From the NCBI GenBank assembly GCA_907165135.1, contig OU015568.1, positions 10,106,001 through 10,170,000 of the forward strand: a DNA stretch of 64,000 bases. Reading direction: 5' to 3'. Made by a program: the position numbers and the translations under genes. Under the pieces are notes generated by a model. That model searched no databases. It had not been told where the DNA came from and saw only the letters and a list, made by a program, of their open reading frames with translations. Of the stretch, positions 1-58,500 are shown piece after piece. This stretch comes from Oikopleura dioica. Taxonomy: Eukaryota > Animalia > Chordata. The stretch's first letter is position 1; each line of letters starts with the position of its first letter.

Positions 1-840
1 AACACAAGAATCCGCCAGGAATACTTCGCGCAGAAAGAACGAGAAGAACGAGAGGCCAAGCGACGCCTGGAGACTCAACAGAAGCTGCTCGAAAAAGCCG
101 ACAAAGCCGCAGAAGCCGCCACCGGAGAAGACAAGCCACTCAGATCCCCTCGCATCAGCATCTTCCAAGTGGCCGAAACCGGAGAGCGTGGAAACTACTA
201 CTACCTCACAAAGAAACAAGGAAAGGGAAAAACTTTAAAACTCTAAATTATAAAGAAAGACTAATAGCCTCCAAAAACAATAAAGTTTAACCCTTGAAAA
301 AGCCAAGCTCATGGACAAAGCCGCCATTCGAGAAGCACTCAACCATCGACGAAGCGAAAACGACAAGCTCAGCGCGGAAGAGCGACAAGCAGCAAAGGAA
401 GCCTGGTTCAGCAGCCTCAGCTTCGAGAAGTTCTCCAACTCGCAGAAGCCTGACCACAAGTTCGCCAAGTACCACCGACCAAGCGGCTGGCGAATCAAGG
501 ACGAGCCACCCTTCAACGCCTCCAGCCTCATCCGCAAGCACGAGATCCGGATGTGCCATTATATCTTTGAATTCGTCAATTATCGAGGCATCAAGCGGCG
601 ATTCAAAGAAGCTTACGGTAAGTCAACAAGCCTTGGAAATTTCCTCAGAAATAACACTTAATTTTAGATGCCGGCCTCATCGACCCTCAGCGTCTGGACA
701 TCCTCATGGTCTTCACGATGAAGATCGTCGGCGGGAAGCTAGTCAAGTTCATCCGCCACATGTTCGTCCGATGCTTCCACGACCACAACATCCAGCTGCC
801 AGGCATCAACATCGAAGCAGCACCATCAGCCGACTACTAA
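1..840 (+). CDS. Element ORF-A (5'-partial, unknown function); inferred exons <1-220, 303-617, 668-840
   Basis: Three open segments join in frame via an inferred GA-AG intron (221-302) and a GTAAGT..TTTTAG intron (618-667); ends ..AAPSADY* at 840. Confidence 0.6.
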
Positions 841-1130
841 AGCAGCCAAAGCAGCAAAAGCATCTACAGACAGAAATTGTCTACTTTCTGAAATCTGCCT
901 CAGATTTTTAGCATCCTTTTTATCCTTTACTCATTGAAAAAAAAAAAACTCTTTTCCTTTCATTGGCAAAAGCCAGCTGTTCCAGAATAAATAAGCAAGT
1001 CTCACTAGAAGACAAATGCCTTTTCTTTTCCAAAAAAAAAAAGAAATATAATAATAAGCAGCTTTATTACAAAACAAAGTTTCAAGAAGCAGTAATTTTA
1101 GAAGCCGAATAACGTACCCTAGTTTCGGAA

Positions 1131-2708
1131 ATGGAAGCAGCAAAGGACTCAGAAGCAGCTGAGTTTCAAATGCCTTCAGCTTCAGGAAAAGGCTACTTAG
1201 CATCGGTTATAATAGAATCCTTTATAGGAGATAATTTTGAAATTAGGACTGATTCTAGTTTTTGCATTTCATCAGTTTCTTCAAAACCCGAGCGGCAAAA
1301 CTCAAAAGAGACCCAACCTCATAAAACTTCGGGTTATGATTTTTTTTTTTTTTTGATAGAAAAGGAAAATATAATAAACAAAGCCTCAAACTTAGAAGAA
1401 TCTCTTGACAGCAATGCCTCCATTGGTTCCGATAAAGACCTCGAAGCAACCAATGATGAGCCCCCTCTTGAGGCTCACGTCGCGGACACGACAGCCAGGA
1501 AATCCAGCCTCAAGCTAGAAATCCTCAAAAGTCTGGTCTGGGACATTCAAAATAGCCTCAACACAAATGCTGCGGTACCACCCAAAAGAATCGCTTGCTA
1601 CGGTGACACAGTGGCAGAAAAAATGACAAATCTAGTCAAAGAAGCCACCAAAATAATTTCCGAGTCTCAAGAAGCATCGAATCAGGTGCGAAAAATCCTG
1701 GCCCAAATGGAAGAAGAAGATACCGAAGCAGCTGAAACGATAGAAGCCTTCCAAACAATAGCGATCATCTCGCACAGCATCTCAATTAAGATAAATCGCC
1801 GACTCGCTTCAACAAACAAAATCGAAATCGAAGAAGGCCAAAGCATGCTGCAGAATAAGGTGCGGCCGGTGGTAGAAAACCTGATGAAGCAAGTCCACAA
1901 GTCTCAAGTCTTCTGCTCGAAGGAGCTAGTATTCTGGGCAAAAATGATGGAGCCCACGGAACAAGATTCAGTCGACAAAGAAGAATTCATCAAACTGGAA
2001 GAAGCTGTCATTTGGATTCTGGAAAAACTCTGGGGCAATTCAGCCACAGCAATCCTCAGAATGGCTCTTGCGAAATGCGAGAAAATCCCAGAAATAGCCT
2101 CTAAAACATCCCCAAGATTCGTCATGTTCGCCCACATCTGGAACATAAGATTCAAGCAGATACTTAGAAGACAGGAAAATGAAAGAGAAGCATCCTTTGC
2201 TAACGAGCAGCAATTAGCAGCAGCTATCACGAAGGCACTCTTTGGAGACATACTTTTCCAAATCACCAACACCCGCTGCATCTTCCCAAGGCTGCTAGCA
2301 AGCGCGGCGAGATCAGCGTGGACGCATCTCAACATCATGTTGGGCGAATCAAACCCACTCAGCAGCAGCCTGAAAGTCTTCCTAATAAACATCGATTCCA
2401 ACCCAAACTTCACGGCCTGGGAAGCGATTCTATCGCTAAGAAAAATTTGGCCTAATCGCTCAAACATCCCCGAGGCAGAATACAGGATCCTTAATCTGGG
2501 CGGGATCGATGATAGGATCGAATTAGGCATCGAGGTTCCAGCATCTTTGAACGGAACAACATACGAGAAGCTATTCTGGCGCATTCCGATTCCACGAAGC
2601 TACGAGAACAATGGATTCCAGCGTCAAAGAAAGAGAAAGAGAGAAGAAAACGAAGAAGCCGCCATCATGGACGAACATCAAGACGGAAATGACGGCTTTA
2701 GCAGCTAA
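1131..2708 (+). CDS. Element ORF-B, 525 aa, unknown function (true 5' end uncertain)
   Basis: Long ORF with element-like codon bias, a predicted helical middle and a basic RQRKRKRE motif at the C-terminus; overlaps the start of pol. Confidence 0.65.
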   Translation: MEAAKDSEAAEFQMPSASGKGYLASVIIESFIGDNFEIRTDSSFCISSVSSKPERQNSKETQPHKTSGYDFFFFLIEKENIINKASNLEESLDSNASIGSDKDLEATNDEPPLEAHVADTTARKSSLKLEILKSLVWDIQNSLNTNAAVPPKRIACYGDTVAEKMTNLVKEATKIISESQEASNQVRKILAQMEEEDTEAAETIEAFQTIAIISHSISIKINRRLASTNKIEIEEGQSMLQNKVRPVVENLMKQVHKSQVFCSKELVFWAKMMEPTEQDSVDKEEFIKLEEAVIWILEKLWGNSATAILRMALAKCEKIPEIASKTSPRFVMFAHIWNIRFKQILRRQENEREASFANEQQLAAAITKALFGDILFQITNTRCIFPRLLASAARSAWTHLNIMLGESNPLSSSLKVFLINIDSNPNFTAWEAILSLRKIWPNRSNIPEAEYRILNLGGIDDRIELGIEVPASLNGTTYEKLFWRIPIPRSYENNGFQRQRKRKREENEEAAIMDEHQDGNDGFSS

Positions 2709-5141
2709 AGGCACTTTCGAAAAAATCAACCTCAACATCATCACACCCGTCACAATTATAGAATCACCCCATAAAGGACCAAGGTCACTCCAGGAATGGA
2801 AATTATACGAATCAAAGCTGCTACATAGAGTCCTCGACGTCTTGAACAATCGAGAAAAACCGGACTGGTCCACCTTATTTTTCAAAAAGGAATCAGACTT
2901 TGTCGCGGGAATCTGGACACACAACAAAGATAACTGGCGTGCACTCATCCAGCAGATGCCAGAGAAAATAAAGCCGCTCATCTATCACTTCGTGATGAAT
3001 GGAGCCGACCTTTTCTAAATTTGAAGCCGATCCCCCACACGAAGCCAGTTGAATTCAAGAAAAAGAAGCTGGTAACGAGATGGAAGAGGAATCATGCGAA
3101 CTCAGAAGCACTGAAGAAGCTGGGCGGCAATCATAAAACCTGGTACAACGGTCGCCTGCGGCTGTCGAAATTTGTGCCAAAACCTTACGAAAAAATTGGA
3201 AAAAGATTCAAGAAGCTTCAAGTCGCTAGTCAAGAAGCAGTCAGAGAAAGAAACGACGAAATCGTGGACCAAATCACAAAATGGTGCAGAATGGGATCAA
3301 TTTCCAGACTCTCGGAAGCATCAACGAACTGCTGGCTTCAATCAGGCTTTATCCTGGTAGATAAACCGGGCAGGGAGACAAGAGTATGCCTCAATGGAGG
3401 AATCCTAAAGCCGCTACAGCTGTACACGTTTCCATGCAAGCTAGAAGCAGTGGGGACGGCAATTCAGATGCTCAAGAAAGGAGATCTGCTCTACAAGTTC
3501 GATGACAAAAAAGGTAATTATTGGAAAAAGAAGATTACCTAGCGCCGATATTCAGGTTTCCATCAGCTGCCACTCTCCGAGGAGAGTAGAAAAATGGCAT
3601 GCTTCGAATGGGGAGGCCAAAGATTTAGAAACAACATCCTGGCATTCGGACTCCCGGCAGCTCCAGGCATCTACCAATTAATGAATCTCTGCGGCGTAAA
3701 TTTCCTGCGGAAAAATGGCATCAAAATCACGCTCTACTTGGACGATAGACTCCTAATCGTCACACCAGCATCAGATAAAGAAAGAAAGCAGCTCCTGGAA
3801 GGGAAACAAACCAGCAGAGAAGTCTGGGCAACAGCAGCAACTCTAGTAGCTCTGGGCGGCTACGTAAACATCGAAAAGAGTACCTTTCTACCGACTCAGC
3901 GAATAGAATTCCTCGGCTTCATTCTTGACACAGTCAAGGAAACAGTGGAAATCCCGCCGCAAAGATGGAACGCGCTAATTTCACTGATGAACGAGGCCCT
4001 GGAAAAGCAGCTAGTGGAAATGAAGCTGCTAGAAAGAATCAGGGGAACAATGGCAAGTATGGCGGAGGTTTTTCCCAACATGAGGCTTCTCATAAGACAG
4101 ACGACGCTTCTGATAAAGCAGGCCGACAACAAGAACCAAGAGAAGATCCAGCTCACGCGCCAAATCAAGGCGGAATGGAACAGGTGGCGGAAGCTAGAAG
4201 AAAAGGGCCTCTCAAGAATCTGGACGCAGCACAGCCGCCAAGACACGGGTATAATCATTTACACCGACGCGTCATCACATGCAGGGGCAATAGTAATCGA
4301 ACAATGGGCGCTCGAAGAAAAATTCGCCTGGGACGAGGAAGCGGCCGATAAACACATATGCATCAAAGAAGCACTGGCGATCCTCTACGCCGTGGAATGG
4401 TACGGCCCAAAGCTCGAAAACAAACGAGTTCTTTTCCTCTGCGACAACGACTCAGTAGTCCAGGGAATAATCGCAGGAAGTAAAGACCTAGAAATGAACG
4501 ACATCCTGGTCAGAATCTGGGAAGCAGCACAAAAATTCAGCATCGACCTGAAATGCGACTGGGTTAGCACCAAAAAGCAGCTAGCAGATGCGCCGTCAAG
4601 AATCATCGACTCAAGAGAGCAGCGCCTTACGGCCAACGGCTTCGCATATCTTCAATCTCATCTCTCAGAAGCGCTTGATGTCGACGTGGCAGCAACGGTA
4701 AGCAAAAAAAAGAGAGAGCGCAAACGCGTCATTAAAAATAAAACCAAAAGGCGAAGAGAGAAAAACCAGATTTTTCAGATTCTTAATACGAAATGCAAAG
4801 ATTTCATAAGCCGCAGAGAATCACAAGGAGCCATCGGGGCAGATTTCCTCAGCTTCCCGATCCACAAACTAATAGGAAAGAATCTATACGCTTTCCCTCC
4901 GCAAGCAGTCGTTTACAGATTCTTCAAGAGGCTGTTGGAAATCCCAACACCCTGGGTGCTTCTGGTGGCAATCTACGAAGCTGAGATTCCAGTCATCACA
5001 GCAGCCAGATCTAAAGGTTTAAGAATCTTTGATCTTCCAGCAGATTCCATCCTCACCCCCACAAAAGTCAAAACAGCATCCGGATACTGGAAAACAGCAT
5101 CAAACATCTCAACTGTAAAAGCTATATCGTACAGACTCTAA
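2689..5141 (+). CDS. pol: reverse transcriptase + RNase H + DIRS-type methyltransferase-like domain; introns 3514-3555 and 4698-4778; frame break at ~3012-3020
   Basis: DIRS-like N-terminus FVAGIW..NW..I..FVMNG; splicing rebuilds KFDDKK/GFHQ; FGLPAAP; YLDD; RNase H motifs; splicing rebuilds DVDVAAT/ILNTKCKDFISR followed by YAFPP. Confidence 0.9.
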
Positions 5142-5263
5142 AAAATAAGCTGCTCTGATTACTATAATTTCCATCCAAAATCTAAAATTTGTTTTTTCTT
5201 TTCGTACAAAAGTCGATGCTAAAAAGAAGCCCCTTTTTTCAGAATCGAGCCAAAGCAGCTAGA

Positions 5264-6511
5264 ATGGCAGAACGCCAAAATGTGTTGTCCATGGTGAAAG
5301 AGCACCTAGCATCAACGCAGCACGATACGAAGACAAGAGCGGCCCGTTTCGCCATCACGCAAGCTGACTACGAGGCCGAAAAAACAGCTCCAGAGACCTC
5401 GGGCGATATCAAACGGCTGCAACTTGAAATCGACGATATCCGCGGCGACCTGGCAATGCACGATTCTATCACCGATGAACTCATCGTAAGCCAACGAGTC
5501 TTATTTTATCATATAAATTTACAAATATTATCCCAAGGCCGAGATGAAGACGCTCGCAGAAAACCGCGAAAGAAGCATCGCCATTAAAGCTGCTGAACCT
5601 AACGCAAGGAAGCGTTCAGCAGAGGACAACCAGTTCTACGACAAGAACAATCCGAAGGAGATCGGCGAAGTTCTGGAGAAGCTAAGCAGCAAGAAAATGG
5701 AACGCTACAACGCGAAATCCGGTATGCTCAAAGCCATCAAGATTCGCGAAGCAGAAATCGCCGATCTCACCTTCAAAAGAGGGGAAACAGCAGCAACTCA
5801 CAAAGAAGTCGACCCCATTACGGGCAAAATATCCTACTACAAGGTAAGTTCAAAAAAAAAGAACATGCGGCTAATCTAACACCTTTCTTACAGACCCAGG
5901 TAGCGGCCGTTGACCTCAACCAACACGAGGGCGAGAACATCGACGATATGGGCCGCTTATTCCGCCAGTTTGTCACGGACCCAAAGAAGCAACGAAGCTT
6001 CAAGGGATCCGAGCTTCTCGAGCTTCTCCGACGCTATAAAGAAGCCATGGGCCCAGAGCACTCGGCGAAGCCGGTCGTCTCAGCCATTATCGACACCCTT
6101 ATCAGAATGCCCGACATGCCAAGACGAAACGCGCTGCTCAGATGCGCATCTCTTATGACAGCTTCTACCCAGCACGATTTCGACTACATGCTTAGCATGA
6201 ACTGGACAACCCCGCACCACAAAAAGTGGATGCAAGCGGCCATGGACGGTTCAGAAGACTGGCGTCACACCGGCAAAGACGGAAGCAGCAGAAAGGGTCG
6301 CCGAGGCGGCTACAACGACTACGGAACGCACAAAAAGCAGAAGACGGAGCAAAGCAGCAGTCAGAAATCTGACAGCTCGGAGGAACAAAAGGGCAAAAGC
6401 TCAAGAGGACGCGGAAGAGGTCGTGGCCGAGGCCGTGGACGTGGCCGAGGAGGCGGAAGCAATCCCAACGGCGGCACCAAGAAGCCCCAAGACCAGGGAG
6501 GAGTCGAGTAA
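5264..6511 (+). CDS. Element ORF-C, gag-like / RNA-binding protein with RG-repeat tail; introns 5486-5537 and 5844-5893
   Basis: Three ORF-track segments join in frame through GTAAG..AG introns of 52 and 50 nt; coiled-coil-like N-terminus; C-terminal RGRGRGRGRGRGRGGG. Confidence 0.75.
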
Positions 6512-6723
6512 AAGAACAACCAAAAAAAAAAATAAGCCGCTCATAAGCCGCTCAATCATTAGATCTTTAAAAGCTGCTAATCTATTCTAAAAACAGGCCC
6601 ATGCCAAGGCGCCTCTCCTCCTTTTTCTTTTTCAAAAAAAAAAGCTTATAAACAACAAAATATTTCCGAAAGCCGCTCCAACCATCTCGGATGCAAGAGT
6701 TAACATTTTTTATCTTTTTAGAC

Positions 6724-7946
6724 ATGACATGGTTAGAATTTGAGCATCTTAAAGAAATCTGGGACGTCACAGAGGCACTCTCAAACCCTAACGAGGAAGA
6801 AAAGGATGACGAATCAATCATCCAGAATTTCCTCGACAGACTCTTAGACAAACCGAAGCTCAAAGCCTACGCCTATGGCAAAGGCGTAGTTATCATCCAG
6901 GACGTAGCAGCTGCGAAGCTCAAAAAGCCGCTCACTTCGAAGCTCAAAAGACAAATAAAGCTCTGGTGCGAACGAAGAGCAAGAGAATCGGCCAAAGAAT
7001 CCCTTCAGTACCCCAAGGTTACCAGAAATTAAAAAAAAAAGAACTAACTCTCACAACCTCATTAAGCAAGCCGAGATACTTGACGAACCGGAAGCGGTGA
7101 AGCTCTGGAAGGGGCTAATGGACACGGATAAGCCCAAGCCGCGAGAAGTAGCCATCGCCTTCTTCGTCACCTACGTCACAGGGGCAAGAATGGGGGAAGC
7201 TCTCAGCCTCAGAATCGAAGACAGAAGCATCATGAAGGAAGCCGCCAAAGAATTCTGGCGTTTCCATATTAGAAGCAGCAAGACCGACCCATTCTGTAAA
7301 CGAATGGAAACAATCAACATCCCAATGGATATAAAACACGGGGTCCCACTTGCGCAAGAACTGCGACACCTAGTCCGGGACAAAGACTCAGGTAAATCCA
7401 AAATTCACCAAAAACCATCAATGGCCACAATTTTTCTTCTAGGGCTGCTCTTCCCGCTGCTCGAAGAAAAAACCAGCATCGCAGGCGACTACCTCAGACG
7501 CTACAGCGACAAAGTAGGAATCGGCAAAAAGGTAGCGGAGTCAAAATAAAAAAAAAAAACACAACGCCGCCAGGTTTCAGCACACTCAGGCCGCGTCAGT
7601 TTCTACATCGAAGGCCGCCGAGCCGGCCAAACCCAGACAACGCTCACCCACACAATGCGCTGGGCACCGGGAAGCACGATGCCAGACTACTACGAGCGAT
7701 GCTGGCTCGAGTGCGCGGAAGACGGAGCACCAGCAGCCATCGCAGAAGCAAGAGCAGCAAAGAGACGCATCACCAACCCTGCAAGCACTCCAGTGCCCAG
7801 TGATGACGAGGAGGCCGAAGTCCCCGCCAAAAAGGTAAGAATATAGGTAAGAAAGTCGTTCAAAAACGTCCACCTAGACACGAACAGACAGCAGCCTCGG
7901 CAGCAGCAAAAACGAAAGTGCGGACACGATTCAGCACGAAAACTGA
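6724..7946 (+). CDS. Tyrosine recombinase; introns 7018-7066, 7392-7442, 7532-7573, 7835-7877
   Basis: Catalytic set GARMGE (R), RSSKTD (K), AHSGR (HxxR), MRW (W), PDYY (Y) is assembled in one frame by four GT-AG introns of 42-51 nt. Confidence 0.9.
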
Positions 7947-8005
7947 AGCCTTCAAGGTTAAAGAATCCAAAAGCTGCCTAATTTTCCTTTTTTAATCAGT
8001 TCAAA

Positions 8006-8011
8006 AATAAA
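8006..8011 (+). terminator. Putative polyadenylation signal after YR
   Basis: AATAAA ~60 nt downstream of the inferred YR stop. Confidence 0.4.
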
Positions 8012-8059
8012 AAGTAAGCCACTTTTTCCAAATGATGAGAATAACAAAAATGGTAGGGA

Positions 8060-8543
8060 GGGAATATTCCTGTTACCATATTTATTAATGCGTGATTACT
8101 ATACGAATATCGGATTCGGATTAGCAGTTGCATGGCTCGGCGAGCTCGGATTAGCAGCTAAGGAAGCAGGAGCGCCATGACCTACTTCCAGAAGCGGAAG
8201 GTGACACAGGCGTAAGAGAGCGAGTGACAAAAAGAAGCTGCAGAGAATCACGCAATTCAGTTCCAAAAATTATAGCCCTAGGCTATAATATCTATAGGGA
8301 AGGTTAAGAGAATTATTGAGAGCCTCCAAACTCGCGCAGCCGAGAATTCGAACAACTCTCAAAAAACTCACCCACCCTCCATCCCTAGAATGAAACGATA
8401 GTATGTAGGTAAAACGAGCACACGCTTACATACTACCCTCACCATAACCACGACTCTCCGAATCAGAGTCTTCCATAGTATAGTAATTGCGCGTGCTCGG
8501 GAATATTCCTGTTACCATATTTATTAATGCGTGATTACTATAC
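8060..8543 (+). repeat. Split direct repeat end: B1 (8060-8104), unique A2 candidate (8105-8498), B2 (8499-8543)
   Basis: Identical 45-mer GGGAATATTCCTGTTACCATATTTATTAATGCGTGATTACTATAC occurs twice. Confidence 0.85.
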
Positions 8544-8698
8544 TAAGTCTGAAAATATTAGGTAAAATTGGAAAAAAAAAGAATGAGAATCGGCGGCGGG
8601 AAAAATGGCTGCCGGCCAGAATGACCCCGCTCAAGCATTTTAAAAATTAGGAATTAACGACTCTGGTGTGAAATCTTCGCTCTCATTAGAAAGAGAAT

Positions 8699-52510: not shown

Positions 52511-55500
52511 ATGTCGAACACAAAGAGAACGCATAGAGATTCAACTCGAGCAAGCAGATATCTACGCATATTGTAAGCATATTTTATATTCTAAGCTCAA
52601 CTAATTAAAATCAAATTAAGATGCAACAACACAAAGTGGCAAATATTCTACTGAAGACATAGAGGACTTTTCTGAACGGGAAATCGAGTTGAGGTCAGTC
52701 TTCATTTTATATCTCTATTGATCAAGCTTCTTTATAGGAAAAATATTTTAGAACAAGGTTCAGAATTTGGTGTTAAAATCGCAGCTCAGTTGCGTTACAT
52801 TGGGGAAGCATATGACCGGCTGGGGGATTTCAATGAAGCTCTCTCTTTCTTTCACAAACTTGTGGATGAAGCGAATACAAGTTGCGTCGATTTTCAGAAG
52901 CGATCCGAAGCATATTACACCCGTGGAAAACATTTCTTCGATAATGGGTTTATAAATCAAGCAATGCCAGATGTAAAGGAAGCGCTGAAGCAAATTTCTG
53001 TTCAAGCAAAAGGAGGTGTTGCTGCTTTTGGGTGCTCAAAGAAGAAAGAGGAAGAAATGCACAGAATGCGTTTCAAATGTGAAGGACTGCTTGCGATGAT
53101 TTATACAAAGCGCAATCAAGAAGGAGATAAGCACAAGAGTCAATCAAGACTGAATAACGCTATCAGAATATCCAAAGAGCACAATCTTTACGAAGACAAG
53201 TTCGACTGGTTCAATATCATCGCTGCAGAAGAGGCTAATCGTGGGTGCTACTCTTCAGCAGAAACGAAGTTCAAGGAAGCGATGGCGTCTATTGATCACT
53301 TGAAAGAAAAAGACGTTGTGAACGAGAAAAAATTTGAACTATTCACCTGCTGGGGCAGTATGTACATCTACCAGTATAAATTCCAGAAAGCGATGGAGCT
53401 CTATCGCGATGCTCATGCGATTTACCCGAAAAACCAGGAATGCAAAGAAATATATAAAGTATTGTATCTCAATGATTGCCAGAAGAAAGAGTTAGAGGCT
53501 GTGGATCCTGTGGATTTCGAGGAGATCGCACGAATGAAGGATATTATGGGCGACATCTGCTTCTTCTTCCATGATAAATTTTCAAACCGAGTGTCAAAAA
53601 GCACCCTTCTCGTTGGCGCCTTGGCTCGTTACACAGAACGATTAACTGCTCTTACAGAGGCGAATTCCGAAAAAGTAGCTTCAGCTCACGTTACATTAGC
53701 CACTGTCCACAACGAGCTAGGAGATCATGAAAGTGAAATTGATCACTACAGGCTGGCTATGGAGGCAGAATCCACTCCTCTTGAAAAGCGCTACAAGTTC
53801 CTGGACGAAGCTGTTACTTCGATGCAGGATGCGAAGAAATCAAACAGTTGTATCGTTGAGTTTTTCGAGGATGTGAAGACTATTTTCGATTCTTCTGCCG
53901 CGTTGAAAATTGGTGTCCTGAAACAAATGAAAGAGTTTCTTAGCGATAACAGTAGTACTATTGCTTCCAGTGAAGATATGATTTTTGAGGTTACAGAAGA
54001 GCTTGATCAGCTTGAGTCTTCAAGCTCTCAGTCTGTGCGTGAGTTGGACTCACTTGAAGACAACGAAGAAGCTACTCCCACTGACATCAAGGACAGAATA
54101 AAATCAGTGAAGTTGCCCAAGCCAATGAAGCAAACGAACTCGAACAAACCCTGGTGGGATCTTGATCGAAATCGTCTCGGGGAAACTCTTTTGCAGAGAA
54201 AAGTGATTGATCTAAAACTCACTGACGAGCCAAGAGCGAAGTTAACAGAAATCGAGCAGCTGATTACTGTCCAGAAGCATCCAGTCAATGTTTGGGACAA
54301 TACTGGTCTTACTCCGCTCCACGAAGCCGCCAATTGGGGCCTTCCTAAGGTTGCGAAGATCCTGCTCAAAAATGGGGCAATGGTCAATGCTTTAACACAC
54401 TCAAATATGGAATTCGAAAAAGAGGAGTCTGGCGAAGGCACGAAAGAGGGTTCAATAACACCACTTCAAGATGCAATTGAATCACTGGTTGGAGAATCAT
54501 CTGATATTCAACTTAAAAAACTGGAGTTCATTCAAGTTATTGTCGAATACGGGCCAAATGTTCTAAGAAAGAACTCAAAGAATGAAACTGCTTTGAAATC
54601 GTACAACAGAATCAAGGAAAGTATTCAGTACCAATACAAATCTGCTCTTACAGATGATTTGAAAAACAAACTCGATTCGGTCCAGACATCCTTGTATCAG
54701 CTCACTCAAGCTCAGCGTGATAATCCTCGGATGATAGCAGAAGCCGCGAAATCAGGGAAAGCTGGAGCGACTGCAACGCCAACTAGTACTCGAAGACCAC
54801 CACCGAGGCCGACCACGCCAGAGGAAGCGATCGAAGTTGCACCGAGAAGACTTCAAGGAGTTAGCAGACTTATGCACGACGAGGATGATGATGAGCAAGA
54901 AAGGGATGAACGAGAGGCAAAGAATCCAATGAAGCATTTTCTCAAAAAAGTAAAGCGTGCTGGATCGATAAGCTCTGGTGGTTCTAGTGATTACGGTTCT
55001 TTACATCAATCAAATGGAGGGAATTCTCCGAGAGTAAGCTCTTCTGGAAGTCGAAAAAGAAGACAAAGCTCGCCACAGAGAGAAGTTCGAGACTCAAAAA
55101 GGATTCAAATAGTAAGCTCTGAAGATGAGGATTCCCGAAGTCATCTATCTTCTCTAACGCTCAATAGTGATCCAAAGCCATCAGAAATAACAAGTAGCAT
55201 GAATATTTCTTCCACGAGCAAGAAGAGACGACTGACGGTCTCATATTTGAATGAGGATTATGCTCGGCGAAGACTTCGGATCACAATCGAAGATTGTGTC
55301 ACCATCGAAATCCTCAGGTAACTTGAATCAGTGTTGGAAAACCCGCAACATTTCCCGCGGGCGCGGGCGGGCGCGGGGGCCGATTTCAAAATTTTCCGCG
55401 GTTGCGGGCGGGCGCGGGGGCCGATTCCTAAATTTCCTGCGGGTCCGGGCGGGCGCGGGGGCCAACTCAAAAATTTCGTGCGGGGCCGGGCGGGCGCGGG

Positions 55501-58500
55501 CGGGGGCCCCGCAGATTTTCGCGCCCGCGGGCGCCCGGGGGGTTGAGGGCGCCCGTAACCCTCGCGCCCGCAAGCCCCGCGGGTTCAGAAATCAGCAAAT
55601 AAAAAAAATAATTTTTGATAAAAACCATAATAGAGTGATAAACTAAGATAATTTGAATTTTTCAAACGATGGGTGTGGGTGGGGTTGGGGACAAAACTGA
55701 GATTGATCAACTTAGAGTTCCCAGCCAAGCCCCTTAAATTCAAAAATCATGGAACAGGGCTGAGACGGCCCGAAGGGCCGTCAAGCCCTTAAATTCAAAA
55801 ATCATGGAACAGGGCTGAGACGGCCCGAAGGGCCGTCAAGCCCCTAAAATTCAAAATCATGGAACAGGGCTGAGACGGCCCGAAGGGCCGTCAAGCCCTT
55901 AAATTCAAAATCATGGAACAGGGCTGAGACGGCCCGAAGGGCCGTCAAGCCCTTAAATTCAAAAATCATGGAACAGGGCTGAGACGGCCCGAAGGGCCGT
56001 CAAGCCCTTAAATTCAAAAATCATGGAACAGGGCTGAGACGGCCCGAAGGGCCGTCAAGCCCTTAAATTCAAAATCATGGAACAGGGCTGAGACGGCCCG
56101 AAGGGCCGTCAAGCCCTTAAATTCAAAAATCATGGAACAGGGCTGAGACGGCCCGAAGGGCCGTCAAGCCCTTAAATTCAAAAATCATGGAACAGGGCTG
56201 AGACGGCCCGAAGGGCCGTCAAGCCCTTAAATTCAAAAATCATGGAACAGGGCTGAGACGGCCCGAAGGGCCGTCAAGCCCTTAAATTCAAAAATCATGG
56301 AACAGGGCTGAGACGGCCCGAAGGGCCGTCAAGCCCTTAAATTCAAAATCATGGAACAGGGCTGAGACGGCCCGAAGGGCCGTCAAGCCCTTAAATTCAA
56401 AAATCATGGAACAGGGCTGAGACGGCCCGAAGGGCCGTCAAGCCCTTAAATTCAAAAATCATGGAACAGGGCTGAGACGGCCCGAAGGGCCGTCAAGCCC
56501 CTTAAATTCAAAAATCATGGAACAGGGCTGAGACGGCCCGAAGGGCCGTCAAGCCCCTTAAATTCAAAAATCATGGAACAGGGCTAAGACGAAATTCTAG
56601 TGCATATTCTTTTTCCTTTGATTCAAAGCTATCGAAAGATCTTTGTTTTTTCATTTACATTGAAAAGCGGAAAAATGCGATTTTCACGCTTAGTACTATT
56701 TATATGCATTTTTACGTTTGCCAAAATTTCGGGTTAAGATGTTTGTTAAGGGATAGTGTGATACATCAAAATGATTCTCATAAAACAGGGAATCTTTACC
56801 TTACGACGACAAGTGTGCCATATATGGCACAAAAACTTTAAACGCCCATTTTCTCTCTTCGATCACTTCGGTTACTCTATTTCATTCATTTTTGGTCACT
56901 AGTCTGGGATTGACACTAGGTTCATGTTCGAGTTTAGGTTTCGGGCTGTGTTTCGGTTTGGGTTAAGGTTTGGTTTTCGGAATTCTATTGGTCAAACGAT
57001 GGCATTAAAGTCCATGTGCCATATATGGCACAATTGTCGTCGGCGGGTGAAATTTTGGTTTTTCGTCGTAAGGTTTACATGCTATGAGACCTGTGATAAA
57101 GAGTTGAAAAAACAGGGGGGATCCCTTAAATTCAAAAACCAAGGAGGGAGAAAAAGGGGGGAATTGGCCATTTGGGCCGTCAAGCTCAATTCAAGGCGAG
57201 GGAAGAGAATTATAACAACGCCCGGGGGCCCCGGGCGGTTGAAAAAATTTTGTACGGGCGCGGGCGGGCGCGGGGGCCAAATCAGAAATTGTTTGCGGTC
57301 GCGGGCGGGCGCGGGGGCCAAATCCGAAATTTTTTGCGGGTTCGGGGGGCGCGGGCGCCCGCAGCCCCCGCCCGCCGCCCCCGCGGGGTTCGCGGGCGGG
57401 TTTTTTCCAACACTGACTTGAATTCAAAGTAAGTTTCTCTATCACTCGTCTTAGACACAAAATCATCAAAGAAATTATACGCAAAGAAGATCGGAAGCAC
57501 GACACACCTCAGATTTCAATTTATGTTGGTGAAGATGTAAACGACCGTGTGGAGCTTACTCCCTCTGAAGTCGTTTCTGATTCAATAGACTTCGACAAGA
57601 ATGAAGGAGACATAATTTTTGTCAAAATTCATGAATGGTCAACAGGATTTAGTACATCGACGGCAATTGAGGAATATCGTGATATTGTGCGCAAAGCAGG
57701 TGCAGAGCCCTCTGAGGATTGCATTAATGCCCTGCAATTATCAGGAATCGTTTTTAATCTACCTTCTTGTAAAGGCCCAAGAACTTATTTAAAAACGTTT
57801 ATCAGAAACAACAAAATCGATCTCGCTGACTGGTGTTGTTTTTCAATCAAATCCCAGTGCGCATATAACTGCCATAATGAACATTTTTTCTGGACCATCT
57901 CTTGTCGACTTGAATTTATCCGCACAAAACTTGGAACCGATCTTTGATAAGATCACACTAGCTTTGCCAGAGCTTCAATCTCTCGCTTGTCTCCAGCTCG
58001 CAAAATGCCGTCTGACAAAGTCAAGCCTAGATATGCTTGCAAACTCGACTCATCCGACACTGCGATCATTGGACATTCAAGCAAACGTCACTGGCGACAT
58101 CGGCCCACAACTGTCGAAAATCATTGAGAATTTCAAAGAATTGAGGGACCTGAAACTCTGCCGGATGAAACTGACCGATCTTACCTTTGAAACTAGGATG
58201 GATTTGAGCCAGGTAGCGTAACTAAGTCTTGACTTTTTTTATAAACGACGTTAGTTGACCAACCTCGACATCTCGCAAAACCTCAAGATCGGCCAGATGG
58301 GACTGGAAAATATAAGAATGAGCCTTGGCGATTCTTTCTCGTTACACACCCTTGAAGCAGCGCAAATCACCACTTCTGAGGATATAGTCACGCCTTTGAC
58401 AAAACTTTTCCTCGACACCGTCCAAGACCTCAAACATCTGAACATCTCCAAGAACAATATCAAACAAGAATACATAGAGGACAACCTCGACGATCTCGAA

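Follow-up and report, generated by a model that had tools for sequence, protein, structure and literature searches.

The window analysed here is a stretch of 64,000 nt from Oikopleura dioica (OU015568.1, positions 10,106,001 to 10,170,000 of the forward strand), taken from the Okinawa assembly OKI2018_I69 (GCA_907165135.1), of which C1, C2, C4 and C5 below are contigs. Its first 8,543 nt are the right-hand 8.5 kb of a giant tyrosine recombinase (YR) retrotransposon, which belongs to the DIRS order, has split direct repeats of the PAT type, and has genes that need splicing to be read. All parts of the element described below lie on the forward strand, and positions without a contig name are those of the window.

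Ends, repeats and copies of the element

The original prediction had the element starting at window position 1. However, a left repeat (A1) that is identical to a repeat near the right end (A2) lies at C1:10099556, 6,445 nt upstream of the window start, so the element is 14,988 bp long, 15 kb and not 8.5 kb. Its layout is A1 ... B1-A2-spacer-B2, an arrangement of split direct repeats found in PAT-type tyrosine recombinase retrotransposons (PMC3266345). B1 (8060–8104, 45 nt) holds the palindrome GGAATATTCC and is identical to B2 (8499–8543, 45 nt), which forms the right end of the element; A2 (8105–8369, 265 nt) has 100% identity with A1 (C1:10099556-10099820); and the spacer between A2 and B2 (8370–8498) is conserved and carries short hairpins. 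The conserved pairings in the spacer and B2 join 8399–8407 to 8427–8435 and 8476–8492 to 8529–8545, and these hairpins (8399–8435, 8476–8545), together with the B-repeat palindrome, are candidate recombinase or priming sites.

Seven further full-length copies, 13.9–15.0 kb in length, share this layout. Within each of the eight copies A1 matches A2 (262–275 nt) and B1 matches B2 (43–50 nt) at 98.5–100% identity, while the six lineages into which the copies fall are only 57–79% identical to one another; the window copy is young and was inserted recently. In the copies, self-BLAST on both strands found direct repeats alone and inverted terminal repeats in none; their flanks, unrelated from copy to copy, bear no trace of a target-site duplication. 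With two near-identical twins added to the eight aligned copies, the genome holds ten pol-bearing loci of the family. One pair, C1b (C1:7996224-8010909) and C4b (C4:14190609-14205312), is 99.6% identical, has unrelated flanks and shows, over 14.7 kb, 52 substitutions and 25 indels between its members. About half of these 25 indels change the length of an A or T run, and several fall within introns; the run-length changes may be real slippage or errors of the Nanopore assembly.

Genes of the element

Five genes lie in the window (W, ORF-A, pol, ORF-C and YR, where ORF stands for open reading frame) and at least three more lie upstream of it. All are co-oriented on a strand that is rich in A and poor in T (AT skew of 0.27–0.36 over window positions 1–8000, against about 0 elsewhere), and an AATAAA resembling a poly(A) signal stands near 8010 in the sense orientation. 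The pol gene (2611–5141; exons 2611–3513, 3556–4697 and 4779–5141) carries reverse transcriptase (RT), RNase H and a Dam-like methyltransferase (MT). Exon 2 on its own matches Pfam RVT_1 (E=7e-07), matches to RT_RNaseH are weak, and pol aligns in full to the RT-RNaseH proteins P0035 and P0013; a protein search with the pol ORF matches Oidioi.mRNA.OKI2018_I69 proteins of O. dioica. The MT-like domain has no direct Pfam match in the window ORFs; by alignment, the C-terminal 150 aa of pol correspond to the part of P0035 and P0025 that is recognised as Dam (PF05869), and D-x-F/V-A-S/T ... N and FPP motifs are present there. Constraint within the element is strongest on the exons for RT, RNase H and MT (dN/dS of 0.02–0.12).

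The YR gene (6724–7946) has exons at 6724–7017, 7067–7391, 7443–7531 and from 7574 onward. Its exon 2 gives a weak Phage_integrase match (E=0.015), exons 2 and 4 align in order to the single-ORF YR of the environmental contig L029 (PF00589, E=1e-09; see below), and the R, K, HxxR, W and Y recombinase motifs are visible in these two exons. Pfam scans of every element ORF gave no family match to a DDE-type integrase or to GIY-YIG. The original prediction called this locus a YR retroelement that has, besides its YR gene, RT, RNase H, an MT-like domain and accessory ORFs, and this description stands.

Among the remaining genes, ORF-C (5264–6511; exons 5264–5485, 5538–5843 and 5894–6511) ends in an RG-repeat tail. 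ORF-A (1131–2708) occupies the gag position, with a mini-exon at 1131–1185 and a main exon at 1396–2708, and its dN/dS is 0.07–0.09. Gene W (311–840; exon 1 311–617, exon 2 668–840) is small, with dN/dS of 0.10–0.39. At the left edge of the window, 1–246 is the 3' end of an upstream gene, a K/E-rich ORF resembling a coiled coil (L013 7740-8246), in which divergence is codon-periodic from about −100 to +240. Upstream of the window, the element carries a leader, an ORF of about 1,000 aa with a conserved GA-AG 5' intron, a spliced gene whose ATG lies at about −1640, and this K/E-rich ORF. No upstream or other accessory ORF matched a Pfam family above threshold; the large upstream ORF (1,020 aa in the C2 copy) also gave no usable Atlas match.

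Eight introns are shared by every lineage

Copying from mRNA is expected to strip an element of its introns. Here eight introns interrupt W (618–667, phase 1), pol (3514–3555 and 4698–4778), ORF-C (5486–5537 and 5844–5893) and YR (7018–7066, 7392–7442 and 7532–7573). When the eight genome copies were aligned and a Norwegian O. dioica copy (L028; FN654278.1) was added, all eight positions proved identical in the six lineages and in the Norwegian copy, whose annotation already models some of these introns; both pol introns are also kept in a public contig from another diverged lineage (L035; ERR13954067). The ends are GT..AG in every copy except for one GC-AG, and lengths range across copies from 38 to 87 nt (44–81 nt in other lineages for the W intron) and include all three classes modulo 3. 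Intron interiors are mostly 35–60% identical (about 35–75% overall), rich in indels and near saturation; in the flanking exons synonymous sites are likewise near saturation and dN/dS is 0.02–0.39. The codon-position periodicity of substitutions shifts class across each intron exactly as its length modulo 3 dictates.

Comparison with uninterrupted homologues places the same boundaries. BLASTP of the read-through ORF 3594–5141 against P0013 and against P0035, an RT-RNaseH-Dam protein, leaves a gap of exactly 27 residues, the length of the 81-nt intron, and joins DVDVAAT to ILNTKC. Compared exon by exon, the pol exons of the window abut on the uninterrupted pol of L029 (ENA ERZ27286976 k119_502930), an environmental 24-kb contig with co-oriented ORFs, an 818-aa pol free of introns, a YR and 49-nt B1/B2 repeats, which is a distant relative of the family. 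They abut too on pol in a second giant family of this genome (C4:2814992-2832337 and C5:14563310-14578868; L030-L033); its pol is likewise uninterrupted, and its two copies measure 17.3 and 15.6 kb, contain a 1,438–1,756-aa ORF, and have pol ORFs of 829 and 749 aa. The joins named in the original prediction (KFDDKK/GFHQ, DVDVAAT/ILNTKC and GKK/VSAHSGR) all hold against intron-less homologues. In trees of the pol block the family is monophyletic (99/99), with the second family and L029 outside it; since both of these relatives lack the pol introns, these were gained within the family.

The interruptions might instead be junk acquired after insertion by a dead copy, or the locus might be a single-copy domesticated gene cluster, and the window copy does show damage of the kind that decay would leave: two frame-breaking 1-nt deletions and a private 43-nt insertion. 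One deletion, at about 3011/3012, falls within a T run of pol exon 1 and is private to this copy (an intron near 3013–3030 was considered for this break and rejected), and the other breaks the large upstream ORF; the other window exons have no frame-breaking indel. These two breaks may be real, or they may be homopolymer errors of the Nanopore-based assembly. Decay would not, however, give all lineages, and a second O. dioica cryptic species as well, eight interruptions with conserved GT..AG ends at the same sites, nor leave the exons under purifying selection, and at least ten pol-bearing copies with intact terminal repeats stand at unrelated loci. We consider decay or domestication hardly credible. 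All ten pol-bearing loci of the genome keep the introns, near-identical pairs at different loci included, and no intron-less copy of the family was found among them; as C1b and C4b are near-identical in unrelated flanks, their introns must have gone through recent transposition. Retention through transposition, as the original prediction proposed, is therefore upheld by the ten genome copies, the Norwegian copy and L035, and by these sequence comparisons the eight introns appear to be real spliceosomal introns of the host type, which the family inherited from its ancestor and passes on whenever it transposes.

Revised and lineage-specific introns

The original prediction counted ten spliceosomal introns of 42–82 nt; eight of them stand at their exact coordinates, while its GA-AG intron had to be moved and its fourth YR intron is private to the window copy. 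The ORF-A mini-exon is conserved (55–64 nt) and ends in TCAG followed by GA, GC or GG; stop codons separate it from the main ORF in five of the six lineages, and one aligned acceptor, at window position 1395, is frame-compatible in all six, giving intron lengths of 76–210 nt. The non-canonical intron is thus best placed, on this alignment, at 1186–1395, where it would be GA-AG in the window copy and GC-AG or GG-AG in other lineages; at 210 nt it falls outside the predicted size range.

In YR, 7835–7877 is a clean 43-nt GT..AG insertion relative to sister lineages, and its removal restores homology of the YR tail, moving the stop from 7844–7846 (unspliced) to about 7946 (spliced). A genome-wide comparison allowing up to 3 mismatches found this insertion nowhere else; as it is unique, we rejected a mobile introner as its source.

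Intron content still differs between lineages of the family. The sister clade C1b/C1c/C5 and the Norwegian copy share two GT-AG introns that C1a/C2/C4 lack, one in ORF-C exon 3 (at about 6139) and one in the upstream gene, and pol exon 2 of the Norwegian copy holds a 50-nt intron of its own. One diverged member of the family, in a public contig of 1,576 nt (L034; Logan SRR23998815), has pol exons 1 and 2 joined exactly at the predicted boundary (KFDDKK-G-YHQ) and a different 43-nt GT..AG insert inside pol exon 2 (L034 1221-1263). This contig represents either RNA that was spliced in part or a lineage that lost the intron precisely, and the boundary is confirmed in both cases. The family as a whole has at least eight introns and probably eleven or more. 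O. dioica has a genome known for rapid intron turnover.

Splice acceptors ahead of genes

A search of the 15-kb strand with a stringent acceptor motif gave only 11 matches. Four of them, which lack a paired donor and are conserved in all lineages, are followed after 2–21 nt by a start codon, namely that of the large upstream ORF, the upstream gene, ORF-C or YR. For ORF-C the site is a pyrimidine tract with a CAG acceptor at 5229–5242, 21 nt before the ATG, and for YR it is TTATCTTTTTAG at 6710–6721, 2 nt before the ATG at 6724. The second giant family shows the same arrangement, with most of its ORFs beginning 0–4 nt after a YAG acceptor. Just after repeat A1, where the identity between A1 and A2 ends (L013 1820-1835, at about window position −6180), AAG/GTAGACCATCA is conserved in all lineages and may serve as the splice donor of a leader or as a site of priming. 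Unpaired acceptors in such positions suggest spliced subgenomic mRNAs, which could be made from a leader donor, as in the Oikopleura element Tor3a (PMC4402516), or with a host spliced leader.

How the introns are kept

With a probability of roughly three in four, we read this locus as a giant, multi-gene YR retrotransposon of the DIRS order whose introns are ancestral and transmitted and whose unspliced, full-length transcript is the RNA that is copied. The element's proteins would be translated from spliced mRNAs, while new copies would be reverse-transcribed from full-length primary transcripts that escape the spliceosome. Because the introns are kept in all copies, the template must still carry them, an expectation of the original prediction that retention throughout the family supports. 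The RNA copied and the RNA translated must then be different molecules and, as pol and YR are unreadable without splicing, RT and YR would have to act in trans on an RNA unable to encode them.

Several points weigh against this reading. Reverse transcription of an unspliced template is our inference from intron retention, and a DNA-level route would keep introns too. The case for splicing comes from sequence comparison and from the exact exon-exon join in L034, and this join alone does not separate an RNA from a DNA origin. Four RNA runs carrying the same species label, compared with 2544–8543, gave 2–21 reads each, all of them partial, on A-rich stretches and free of intron junctions, and so uninformative on expression. 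The pol gene and the large upstream ORF of the window copy carry the frame breaks described above. Finally, the AlphaFold2 model of ORF-A (built on a 7-sequence alignment) is all-alpha, with a mean pLDDT of 62, and Foldseek found no PDB match at E<=0.001 and no capsid-like fold, so that the term 'gag-like' used in the original prediction retains its positional sense only. No indexed RNA run contained element sequence, and two annotated proteins (P0001 and P0002) did not map cleanly enough to be used as support for the gene models.

The DNA-level route would resemble that of Cryptons, with YR excising and reinserting a double-stranded copy, the introns being kept trivially and RT serving in another role. 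DNA transposons keep introns by default, YR is strongly constrained, and target-site duplications are not seen, all of which would fit. On the other hand, the exons under the tightest constraint (dN/dS 0.02–0.12) are those of RT, RNase H and MT; the identity of 98.5–100% between A1 and A2 and between B1 and B2 within copies, compared with 57–79% between lineages, fits better with repeats that are rebuilt at each round of replication; the genes are co-oriented on the T-poor, A-rich strand; and the near-identical pairs, whose members stand at different loci, suggest spread by copy-and-paste. We therefore regard movement as DNA as unlikely. A template transcribed from the antisense strand would also account for the stable retention of more than ten introns, and without special packaging, since they would then read CT..AC and be invisible to the spliceosome. 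However, the sense orientation is that of the promoter-like conserved A repeat, of the leader and of the AATAAA near 8010 alike, and with no data in its favour we hold an antisense template to be very improbable.

Within the preferred reading, in which an unspliced transcript is copied, the acceptors ahead of the genes allow a tentative extension, possible but short of even odds. The element could behave like a host operon, with a 15-kb primary transcript cut into monocistronic mRNAs at the acceptors 0–21 nt before most ATGs, either by spliced-leader trans-splicing or from the AAG/GTAGACC site after A1. Spliced RNA would then also be severed from the terminal repeats, so only transcripts that wholly evade the spliceosome would remain usable as templates, and the more than ten introns would for that reason never be purged. 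If true, the family would be a natural trap for new introns, in which an intron reverse-spliced into genomic RNA is fixed by the element's own RT, and this would account for the lineage-specific introns.

Other features of the window

Three further repeat features lie outside the element. Tandem arrays of 54–55-nt units (13 overlapping 300-nt windows, 55676–56632) and of 41-nt units occupy 55336–57390. A 374-nt inverted repeat at 36501–37460, with arms that are 99% complementary and 212 nt apart, has the look of a foldback element or a miniature inverted-repeat transposable element. At several sites in 34855–35308 and 56795–57051, a repeated palindromic motif, GTGTCATATA[CT]GACAC followed by ATTGTCGTCGG, is probably a small mobile element.

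Comparison with known systems

O. dioica is already recorded as having DIRS-like elements (PMC3266345, PMC5240408), and therefore the lineage itself is not undescribed, as the original prediction had suggested it might be. A literature search gave us no description of introns in DIRS, PAT, Ngaro or Oikopleura DIRS-like elements, and one may exist; what appears new, as far as we could find, is the intron load of the family. Some fungal YR elements may also carry introns. Here introns within the RT, MT-like and recombinase catalytic domains persist across lineages saturated at synonymous sites and in two cryptic species of O. dioica, whereas the sister families that share the genome lack them all. 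The family is thus a tractable system for asking how transcripts evade the spliceosome, and it offers dated and polarised cases of intron gain and loss; it also implies that transposon annotation based on ORFs will fragment such elements.

Penelope-like elements share the retention of spliceosomal introns through retrotransposition, which has been called 'highly unusual among retroelements' (PMC8557442, 2021). They differ in having RT of another clade, a GIY-YIG endonuclease, pseudo-LTRs (long terminal repeats) and usually one or few introns, whereas the Oikopleura element has a YR, split direct repeats and many introns within its catalytic domains. Retroviruses and the Oikopleura Tor elements (PMC4402516) likewise use unspliced RNA as their genome and express downstream genes from spliced RNA, and the env mRNA of Tor3a uses a non-canonical GA donor (PMC4402516). 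In those elements, however, introns span whole genes and gag-pol is read unspliced, while the pol and YR described here cannot be read without splicing.

The second giant family and L029 come close in repeat architecture, giant size, starts of the acceptor-ATG kind, and pol and YR at 32–40% identity, although their pol (749–829 aa) and YR each form an uninterrupted ORF that lacks introns at the sites in question; split A and B repeats are both found in the second family, and B repeats alone in L029 and L028. DIRS1-like elements such as DIRS-1 of Dictyostelium have the same enzyme set, including the MT-like domain, and O. dioica is listed among their hosts (PMC3266345); replication of DIRS-1 is believed to proceed through a cDNA intermediate that the YR integrates (PMC7192593). 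In the strict sense, DIRS1-like elements have inverted terminal repeats as well as an internal complementary region, neither of which self-BLAST found in the Oikopleura element. PAT and PAT-like elements (PAT of Panagrellus, kangaroo of Volvox and TOC3 of Chlamydomonas; PMC3266345) likewise combine an RT, RNase H and MT-like pol with a YR, have split direct repeats in place of LTRs or inverted repeats, and show no target-site duplication. From these, the Oikopleura element differs in its length of about 15 kb, its eight or more genes, the extra ORF between pol and YR, the acceptors ahead of most genes, and the at least eight, probably at least 11, conserved spliceosomal introns.

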